Source of the DNA: Macrostomum lignano
Lineage: Eukaryota
Direction of reading: 5' to 3'
Assembly: GCA_002269645.1 (NCBI GenBank)
Contig: NIVC01004168.1
Span: forward strand, 1 to 57,101
DNA: 57,101 bases
Shown here: positions 11,701-12,399 of the stretch, piece by piece
Layout of the letters: each line of letters starts with the position of its first letter
How positions within the stretch are numbered: the stretch's first letter is position 1
Translations under genes and position numbers: made by a program
The notes under the pieces: generated by a model
What the model saw: the letters and a program-made list of their open reading frames with translations, nothing else
Database searches by the model: none
What the model was told of the DNA's origin: nothing

Positions 11701-12399
11701 AGTTAGTTAGTTAGTTAGTTAGTTAGTTAGTTAGTTAGTTAGTTAGTTAGTTAGTTAGTTAGTTAGTTAGTTAGTTAGTTAGTTAGTTAGTTAGTTAGTT
11801 AGTTAGTTAGTTAGTTAGTTAGTTAGTTAGTTAGTTAGTTAGTTAGTTAGTTAGTTAGTTAGTTAGTTAGTTAGTTAGTTAGTTAGTTAGTTAGTTAGTT
11901 AGTTAGTTAGTTAGTTAGTTAGTTAGTTAGTTAGTTAGTTAGTTAGTTGGTGCTTTAGCGGCCCTGACTTTCCTGTGCGCCTCGACTTTCCTCTACACTC
12001 TGCGCCCTGATAGTTGGCCCTCGTAGGATTTTAATCGCACAAGCCCCTTGCCAATATTTCGCTTCAAAATTTGAAGCCTGGAATTTGTGGCTGAGCGCAG
12101 ATTCGCACCTTGGCTCTTTGTTTGCCACTGAGTTGCTCTGCCCCAAAATCACTCCTTCCAGAGAATGCCTCCCAGACGGTAGTCCGGCGGCTCAACGCAT
12201 TCTAAAAAGTGCAACCGCCGGTCCAAAGCGTCGAGAAATCGTGTGCAGCGTGATGTGCTGCGGTCGCACCTACAGAAATGTGACGGAACAACACGAGGGC
12301 ACGCACGAGGAGTGCCAGAAAAGCTCTTGCAAGCTGCTTACCAACCCCTATAGGGTAATCTGTACACCCTGCCAGCTGCTGAAATCCTATTGCAACTGA
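5714..12399 (+). CDS. wnt11: Wnt family ligand, Wnt11-like, 478 aa. Exons 5714-5808, 8782-9050, 9770-10383, 10725-10945, 12162-12399
   Basis: Signal-peptide exon MSTLSRDKQVWWALLLLAVTFLTQQCAAIKW-L; four GT-AG introns with compatible phases (2,1,0,2); 1437 nt total. Wnt motifs CQKQFRHFRWDC, CSRGLIQRCGC, CKCHGSSASCAIRTC, DYC..GTQNR-EC, MCCGRTY. IKWL and GTQNR with an intron inside the Arg codon resemble Wnt11 (GIKWLAL, GTQDR). Wnt identity is secure; the subfamily is less so. Confidence 0.93.
6170..6885. repeat. 20-bp minisatellite (GAAGTCTGAAGATGTCTAGA), about 35 diverged copies, in Wnt intron 1
   Basis: ATGTCTAGAG/AAGTCTGAAG blocks recur every 20 bp. Confidence 0.93.
10519..10604. repeat. Degenerate 14-15-bp repeat (CCCCTGGTGCTAA), about 6 copies, followed by (GT)n at 10635-10653, in Wnt intron 3
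   Basis: CTGGTGCT/ATGATGCT cores repeated in tandem. Confidence 0.75.
11533..11948. repeat. (TTAG)n microsatellite, about 100 units, in Wnt intron 4
   Basis: Direct reading; nearly perfect. Confidence 0.98.

Follow-up and report, generated by a model that had tools for sequence, protein, structure and literature searches.

The tryptophan and the vicinal disulfide at the Wnt index finger's tip are regarded as near-invariant parts of the Wnt–Frizzled interface, and they have been exploited in the engineering of Wnt surrogates and inhibitors. A tip that lacks both is encoded by the gene described here, a Wnt11-like gene on the forward strand of contig NIVC01004168.1 of the flatworm Macrostomum lignano (GenBank assembly GCA_002269645.1), of which positions 1 to 57,101 were analysed (hereafter, the window).

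In canonical Wnt11s, and in the XWnt8–Fz8 (4F0A) and human Wnt3–Fz8 (6AHY) complexes, the finger carries K[YF]xWCCxVx and the thumb is followed by TCW, and the finger Trp and vicinal disulfide form the site-2 contact with the cysteine-rich domain (CRD) of Frizzled (PMC4068752). In mouse Wnt3a, the C334–C335 vicinal disulfide forces a tight turn at the finger tip, the W333A substitution nearly abolishes the pull-down of the Fz8 CRD, V337 is essential for signalling, and W218, the Trp of 'TCW', makes a secondary contact at site 1 (PMC4068752). The F331A, W333A and C335A mutants retain most of their activity in zebrafish embryos (PMC4068752).

Among flatworms, RNAi of Smed-wnt11-2, which cooperates with wnt1, produces tailless regenerates, while RNAi of Smed-wnt11-1 produces short tails, and a β-catenin-independent action has been suggested for the latter (PMC4661829). 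RNAi of fzd4-1 phenocopies that of wnt11-2, and Fzd4-1 is the proposed Wnt11-2 receptor (PMC7830089). The tapeworm wnt11a and wnt11b genes are expressed posteriorly (PMC4778295). For Macrostomum itself, a 2026 preprint names macrostomorph-specific 'WntM' ligands and several Wnt11 copies, and its text is silent on cysteines and on the finger (10.64898/2026.07.29.741434). The fifth exon of the window gene is probably the last one of a highly divergent Wnt11-family gene that is functional and maintained by selection, and in which the loss of the canonical tip is an ancient state of flatworm Wnt11s rather than a recent lesion.

Exon 5 translates as ECLPDGSPAAQRILKSATAGPKRREIVCSVMCCGRTYRNVTEQHEGTHEECQKSSCKLLTNPYRVICTPCQLLKSYCN, followed by the stop codon. 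Its tail reads ...MCCGRTYRNVTEQHEGTHEEC-QKSS-C-KLLTNPYRVI-C-TP-C-QLLKSY-CN, with neither Trp nor vicinal Cys-Cys at the finger tip; the exon encodes no Trp at all, and its sole CC is that of MCCGR. Relative to the canonical finger, C-x-C has become C-x4-C and the loop has gained one residue (10 in total), whereas the Val of V-x-C is kept. Placed in register with the site-2 tip F/Y-x-W-C-C-x-V of XWnt8 and Wnt3a, the segment retains the Val and a hydrophobic Leu at the F/Y position. Twenty-two of the 24 framework cysteines are present, and the two that are missing are exactly the vicinal pair of the tip. A six-frame scan of the whole 57 kb window for WCC, CxCxFxWCC and similar motifs in a Wnt context found none, and therefore no alternative canonical terminal exon lies within the window. 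A preliminary description of this DNA, made from the letters alone, had proposed that the WCC fingertip was lost, and reading exon 5 at exactly 12162-12399 bears this out. The ascending strand of the finger also carries an N-V-T glycosylation sequon (12277-12285, in CCGRTYRNVT), which is common to the Macrostomum paralogue P0003 and to trematode Wnt11s (CCGRGYRNVT).

The same kind of tip was found throughout the flatworm Wnt11s. When 1.84 billion representative proteins were searched with a profile built from the Macrostomum proteins, only 174 matched at E≤0.001, mostly over the N-terminal domain; among the top scorers, those that carry a name were Wnt11s (Homalodisca Wnt-11, Daphnia Wnt-11b-2), together with a Dendrocoelum Wnt. 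The tails of these matches revealed several further Wnts that lack WCC, of which four come from flatworms. A second search, seeded by these four, assembled a flatworm Wnt11 set from planarians (Schmidtea, Dendrocoelum), many trematodes, cestodes and a monogenean. All 20 of the non-Macrostomum flatworm Wnt11 tails retrieved, including those of Schmidtea wnt11-1 and wnt11-2, have no W and no CC (examples in Table 1). Their loop is nine residues long, as in canonical Wnts (eight residues in the monogenean), and has the pattern x[MIL]xx[GN..][FY][KI][VI]x. In register, the Trp site is polar or acidic, the first Cys is replaced by G/N or similar, the second Cys by F/Y, and the Val is V or I. The Macrostomum loop, [KR]LLxNP[FY]RVx, follows this theme with one extra residue and with C-x4-C for C-x-C.

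The window gene shares the derived finger of the clade (KLLTNPYRVI-C beside RMGEGFKVK-C and FIDDKFKIQ-C) and also its altered thumb-proximal motif (TCH beside VCF, ICY and VCI). At that site, where canonical Wnts have the Trp of K/R-T-C-W, Macrostomum has His (window 10282-10284) and the remaining flatworm Wnt11s examined have F, Y or I (P0194, P0197, P0057 and others; P0198 aside). Since the finger WCC Trp and the thumb TCW Trp are both replaced, both of the CRD-contacting tryptophans have changed in the flatworm Wnt11 clade. The WCC is kept, as C-x-C-K[YF]xWCCxVx-C-xx-C, in the Wnt11s of insects, a tick, molluscs and guinea pig, and also in the Wnt4-like, Wnt5b and Wnt2 proteins inspected. 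Our search of the literature found no mention of the missing cysteines or Trp at the flatworm Wnt11 finger tip.

Among 62 representative Wnts whose tails are complete (a biased sample), 44 carry WCC, 11 xCC and seven no CC. In the 11 xCC proteins, the Trp is replaced by H, Q, N, S, F or Y and the CC is kept. Three of the seven CC-less Wnts come from outside the flatworms, namely Penaeus vannamei Wnt9 (P0039/P0153), a Dendronephthya Wnt4a-like protein (P0081) and Wnt5b of the mite Fragariocoptes (P0100). Although they likewise lack the vicinal Cys-Cys, these belong to other subfamilies, have unrelated tips and do not carry the flatworm Wnt11 residues, and their losses are presumably independent.

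Within M. lignano, the window gene belongs to a group of at least three paralogues. Two paralogous proteins, P0002 (450 aa) and P0003 (311 aa), are ~55-60% identical to the window protein, and their finger tips are CQHKTCRLLSNPFRVVCTDCHLKKSICN and CKAKSCRLLQNPFRVDCQPCVLSKSFCS, respectively, giving the consensus C-x4-C-[KR]LLxNP[FY]RVxC-xx-C for the Macrostomum trio. At the paralogue loci L001/L002 and L003, the exon structure matches that of the window gene, and the stop codon comes right after C[NS]. The two genomic copies of P0002 differ by 14 synonymous and no non-synonymous codons out of 458, while their introns are ~91% identical. Across the paralogues, exon 5 shows dN values of 0.27-0.36, with dS at least 0.84 or saturated. 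The 14:0 count, together with an exon 5 dN far below dS, indicates that the variant finger is under purifying selection. Furthermore, the tip is no chance or private lesion: two paralogues have kept it, and their synonymous sites have reached saturation against the window gene. A C-terminal profile search from the three paralogues returned P0003 only, and reached no other Macrostomum species. The first homologue search, with the full protein, returned only four proteins, presumably because the Arg/Gly-rich insert described below swamps the word-based index; the further homologue searches were run from the paralogues and from the per-exon translations.

The gene as a whole consists of five exons with GT-AG borders throughout and encodes a 478-aa protein in an intact reading frame (Table 1). 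The protein was spliced by hand from the genomic sequence, using borders and frame, and was mapped back to the window by tblastn, in which exon 2 matched with 100% identity. By reading of the sequence, a hydrophobic leader, WWALLLLAVTFL, directly follows the Met in exon 1 and is a putative secretion signal. The thumb motif C-K-C-H-G-x-S-x-x-C is present as CKCHGSSASC (10237-10266), with the Ser at CHG-x-S. The protein matches the Pfam wnt family (PF00110) with E=8e-40 and 137.6 bits against a cut-off of 20.3, over profile positions 3-296 of 305. Over 97% of the hand-spliced protein, the UniRef entry A0A1I8J3J2 (P0001), a 'Protein Wnt' of M. lignano, is 100% identical to it. The view that the rest of the gene is intact, also put forward in the preliminary description, agrees with the five GT-AG exons, the leader and the Pfam match. 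Departures from the Wnt consensus are TCW to TCH, CCGRG to CCGRT, S-G-S to S-A-S, and a 60-aa Arg/Gly insert.

Table 1. Coordinates of the Wnt gene features in the window, and finger segments of other flatworm Wnt11s
Feature	Position	Strand	Content or sequence	Basis
Exon 1	5714..5808	+	initiation codon, hydrophobic leader MSTLSRDKQVWWALLLLAVTFLTQQCAAIKW(L), donor gtaagt	six-frame match to the N-terminus of UniRef A0A1I8J3J2 (P0001); sequence reading
Exon 2	8782..9050	+	N-terminal helices, including the CQKQFRHFRWDC motif	AG/GT borders, frame
Exon 3	9770..10383	+	N-terminal domain core, polybasic Arg/Gly-rich insert, thumb	borders, frame
Thumb	10237-10284	+	CKCHGSSASCAIRTCH; acylation-position Ser (CHG-x-S) at 10255-10257	within exon 3
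Exon 4	10725..10945	+	inter-domain linker, including LLFHEHSLDYC and the Macrostomum-specific Cys pair (EEPC...PKCE)	same borders in paralogue loci L001-L003
Exon 5, terminal (fifth)	12162..12399	+	C-terminal domain and stop codon	AG acceptor 12160-12161, TGA 12397-12399
Index-finger hairpin	12313..12372	+	C-QKSS-C-KLLTNPYRVI-C-TP-C	register against canonical and flatworm Wnt11 fingers; strands of the paralogue model flank the tip
Tip loop	12331-12360	+	KLLTNPYRVI; no W, no CC; Val465 kept	
Possible intron inside exon 5	12355..12678	+	donor gtaatc (Val codon), acceptor ...cattcag	UniProt model A0A1I8J3J2; comparison of P0001 with the window
Smed-wnt11-2 (C3U5B2) finger			CGC-FIDDKFKIQ-CDDC	
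Smed-wnt11-1 (B0LMF9) finger			CRC-ELVDVYIVK-CKQC	
Trematode Wnt11 finger			CNC-RMGEGFKVK-CDEC	
Cestode Wnt11 finger			CNC-IMQPNFKVH-CQTC	
Monogenean Wnt11 finger			CNC-RVEDFVIK-CGRC	

The Arg/Gly-rich polybasic insert (9985-10164, exon 3) separates the N-terminal helices from the thumb. Its counterparts in the paralogues are shorter and of the RRRR type, and basic inserts occur at the corresponding point in other flatworm Wnt11s and in a Wnt from an ENA contig (P0007). Disorder is predicted for the insert, as judged from the model of P0002, and it contains many R-x-[KR]-R motifs, which could be candidate sites for convertase cleavage or heparan-sulfate binding. All three Macrostomum paralogues carry the Cys pair of the exon 4 linker without variation, and none of the other flatworm and canonical Wnt11s inspected has it. 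The pair may make up a new disulfide, bringing the total of cysteines back to 24.

To describe the fold, an AlphaFold2 model was made of the paralogue P0002, not of the window protein, from a 53-sequence alignment. The model (pLDDT 85.9, pTM 0.83) is a confident Wnt fold with two domains, a thumb hairpin and a C-terminal finger hairpin. Strands 428-430 and 437-439 flank the tip, LSNPFR, with a finger pLDDT of ~81, and the C-x4-C segment forms a short helical turn. When this model was searched with Foldseek, all hits at E≤0.001 were Wnt structures, among them human Wnt3–Fz8 (6AHY, TM 0.71), Wnt7a and XWnt8–Fz8 (4F0A, TM 0.65). In the search of PDB sequences, the N-terminal domain and the thumb align, but the finger does not.

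Known relatives of the window gene share parts of this architecture. The planarian Smed-wnt11-2 and Smed-wnt11-1 and the Dendrocoelum orthologues resemble it in having a tip without Trp or CC, in keeping V/I and the rung Cys pairs, and in having replaced the TCW Trp; the planarian proteins also carry F/Y at the position of the second Cys. They differ in retaining C-x-C, a nine-residue loop (FIDDKFKIQ, ELVDVYIVK), VSG[SG]C and CCGRG, where the Macrostomum gene has C-x4-C, a ten-residue Asn-Pro loop, SSASC, CCGRT, the 60-aa insert and the extra Cys pair, at an identity below 30%. The neodermatan Wnt11a and Wnt11b proteins (Schistosoma, Fasciola, Clonorchis, Echinococcus, Hymenolepis, Cichlidogyrus) have the same WCC-less tip (RMGEGFKVK, IMQPNFKVH, RVEDFVIK) and basic inserts before the thumb, and those of trematodes share the MCCGRGYRNVT context and the sequon; on the other hand, their inserts are longer and of low complexity, and both C-x-C and the VSGSC thumb are canonical. 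The canonical Wnt11s and the solved complexes, which include the best sequence and structure matches, have in common with the window protein the two-domain fold, the thumb Ser, the framework cysteines and the near-tip Val, and differ in the WCC and TCW motifs. Drosophila WntD is without the acylated Ser. Its structure (PDB 4KRR) is a weak match in fold and sequence, and it too lost a canonical receptor-contact feature; however, WntD lost the lipid thumb contact, whereas the window protein keeps the thumb Ser and has an altered finger, and the kinship is at the level of the family only.

Taken together, the comparisons are consistent with a derived finger that would have arisen early in flatworm Wnt11s (at least in rhabditophorans), in which the tight turn forced by the disulfide would have given way to an ordinary β-turn, with Gly/Asn at the turn, or Asn-Pro in Macrostomum. 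An aromatic Phe/Tyr occupies the former second-Cys position, the Val/Ile is kept, and the two rung disulfides would be kept too. Macrostomum has its own elaboration of this finger, with C-x4-C in place of C-x-C and a loop longer by one residue, LLxNP[FY]RV. The window protein would be secreted, acylated on the thumb Ser and still a signalling ligand, engaging its receptor through the lipid thumb and a remodelled, hydrophobic finger tip (Leu, Leu, Pro, Tyr/Phe, Val). Its role would most likely be in posterior or non-canonical patterning, like that of planarian wnt11-1 and wnt11-2.

Several points weigh against this account. The window gene is known here from genome sequence, comparison and a paralogue model, and the disulfide pairing, Cd-Ci and Ce-Ch, is read from the sequence register and the predicted strand pattern. 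The thumb is unusual (SSASC for VSGSC, TCH for TCW), and its acylation is assumed. The tree described below is distance-based and has long branches, with the Macrostomum–flatworm Wnt11 link at only 60%. The preprint separates WntM from Wnt11 (10.64898/2026.07.29.741434), and the window gene could belong to either group. Finally, the UniProt model has a different 3' end.

The alternative that survives best concerns the receptor. The WCC-less finger of flatworm Wnt11s, that of the window gene included, may have left the canonical site-2 groove and been re-tuned for a dedicated, co-evolved Frizzled, for example of the posterior Fzd4 class, or for a non-Frizzled partner such as Ror, Ryk or Ptk7. 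Both of the CRD-contacting tryptophans are absent clade-wide, the W333 site being polar or acidic and the W218 site F/Y/I/H, and W333A nearly abolishes the Fz8-CRD pull-down of Wnt3a (PMC4068752). The suggestion that wnt11-1 acts independently of β-catenin points in the same direction (PMC4661829). However, the tip is still hydrophobic and the Val is kept, as far as can be argued from sequence, and flatworm Wnt11s appear in this register to keep precisely the residue most critical for Wnt3a signalling, the Val, as V/I. Moreover, the W333A and C335A mutants of Wnt3a signal in zebrafish, so that the loss of the Trp and of the CC is compatible with a working ligand (PMC4068752), and the proposed receptor of wnt11-2 is itself a Frizzled, Fzd4-1 (PMC7830089). 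We therefore regard an altered receptor preference of the WCC-less finger as possible, and a full departure from the canonical groove as a minority view that deserves to be kept in mind. The two ideas, a re-tuned interface and an ancient, maintained Wnt11 finger, overlap and are compatible.

The second alternative is that the Macrostomum genes form a lineage-specific Wnt family, the 'WntM' ligands, with no orthology to Wnt11 and a separate loss of the tip. Such macrostomorph-specific ligands are named in the preprint (10.64898/2026.07.29.741434). Against other Wnts, the Macrostomum profile reaches no better than E ~1e-16, and this in the N-terminal domain only, and CC-less fingers of presumably independent origin occur in shrimp Wnt9, octocoral Wnt4a-like and mite Wnt5b. 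In the neighbour-joining tree (44 sequences, 344 columns), the Macrostomum trio has a bootstrap of 100%, the other flatworm Wnt11s 95%, and the two together 60%, and both are nested among Wnt11s on long branches. The tree thus joins the trio to the flatworm Wnt11s, albeit weakly. The finger itself argues against a separate origin, since Macrostomum shares with flatworm Wnt11s the aromatic, the basic residue and the Val before the closing Cys as well as the loss of the TCW Trp. EQALVHA, F-EHS-DYC and MCCGR-YRNVT are also common to the two, and the top-ranked matches are Wnt11s. On balance, an independent family seems unlikely, and the Wnt11-like identity given in the preliminary description gains support from the best non-Macrostomum matches, from the 60% grouping and from the shared derived finger.

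The third alternative is a natural antagonist, which would bind receptors through the lipid thumb only and block productive signalling by other Wnts. The preliminary description had raised this role, or that of a special ligand, on the strength of the missing tip, and had proposed an alignment with flatworm Wnt11 paralogues. In that alignment the WCC-less tip proved common to all, including the planarian proteins studied by RNAi, and the idea of a special ligand or antagonist is weakened, as every flatworm Wnt11 retrieved has such a finger, the functionally studied Smed-wnt11-1 and Smed-wnt11-2 among them. It is true that the site-2 Trp and vicinal disulfide are gone, and that Wnt3a mutations at V337 and at site 2 uncouple binding from signalling (PMC4068752). 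However, the signalling Val is conserved, and planarian wnt11-2, with the same kind of tip, acts as a positive ligand, which counts against antagonism: its knockdown mimics the loss of wnt1/β-catenin and not an enhancement (PMC4661829, PMC7830089). Purifying selection on the whole protein is equally expected of a normal ligand and does not discriminate. An antagonist is accordingly quite improbable. For the window gene itself, the missing WCC would be inherited, and no mark of an unusual antagonist.

The last alternative is that the finger is an annotation artefact or belongs to a decaying copy, the true transcript ending otherwise, either by the splice of the UniProt model or in an exon beyond the window. 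Splicing from 12355 to 12679 would exchange VICTPCQLLKSYCN for QFSRNACAIVRLCLI (12679-12726), and UniRef A0A1I8J3J2 does end in ...NPYRQFSRNACAIVRLCLI; a GT comes after the Arg codon, with a plausible acceptor 324 nt further downstream. However, this GT is merely that of the conserved Val codon, and the UniProt end drops the last three framework cysteines and would leave framework cysteines unpaired. In all the paralogues the frame runs on to C[NS] and a stop at the same place, those three cysteines are conserved, and the window holds no WCC-bearing Wnt frame. The UniProt 3' end is thus either a mis-annotation or a minor isoform, and we give very little credence to a different true end. A pseudogene is rejected, given that the frame is intact, that the paralogues are conserved and that synonymous and non-synonymous differences stand at 14:0.

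If the reading of exon 5 as an ancient, maintained Wnt11 finger is extended to the whole clade, flatworm Wnt11s would have lost both Frizzled-CRD Trp contacts several hundred million years ago, together with the vicinal disulfide, and yet have remained essential posterior-patterning signals. We offer this larger claim tentatively. Were it true, the phylum would amount to a natural experiment, in which either the site-2 grip is dispensable in vivo or a dedicated, co-evolved interface has taken its place, with an Fzd4-class CRD or a non-Frizzled partner. A clade that combines planarian regeneration phenotypes with Macrostomum paralogues under strong purifying selection offers a testable case for the share of site 2 in binding, specificity and signalling. 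For flatworm regeneration, it would mean that Wnt11-class posterior signals may be read through a modified interface.

Other features of the window are mostly repeats. Inside the Wnt gene, intron 4 contains an (AGTT)x104 microsatellite (11533-11948) and intron 1 a 20-bp minisatellite of 36 copies (6169-6885), while a 52-bp minisatellite of eight copies (4957-5386) lies just upstream of exon 1. Downstream, a tandem segmental duplication (19402-26500 and 27502-34598) is at least 7.1 kb long, has copies that are 99.96% identical and a period of ~8.1 kb, and could be a very recent event or an assembly artefact; it carries 21-bp minisatellites that give rise to long spurious open reading frames (ORFs) in several frames. 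A 238-bp satellite is present in 13 copies (44294-47450), and a 161-bp satellite forms two blocks (51124-52192 and 53189-54439) in opposite orientation, as judged from two consensus units. Scans of the window for tRNAs and Rfam families found none. On the reverse strand, the ORF at 40497-40958 looks like the C-terminal portion of a reverse transcriptase from a retrotransposon (LLYNAETWTL...), with no Pfam match at E≤0.01. The ORF at 49735-50187 on the forward strand has a Pfam match (E=8e-15) to an F5/8 type C / NedA-like galactose-binding domain, and is probably an exon of a lectin-like gene.

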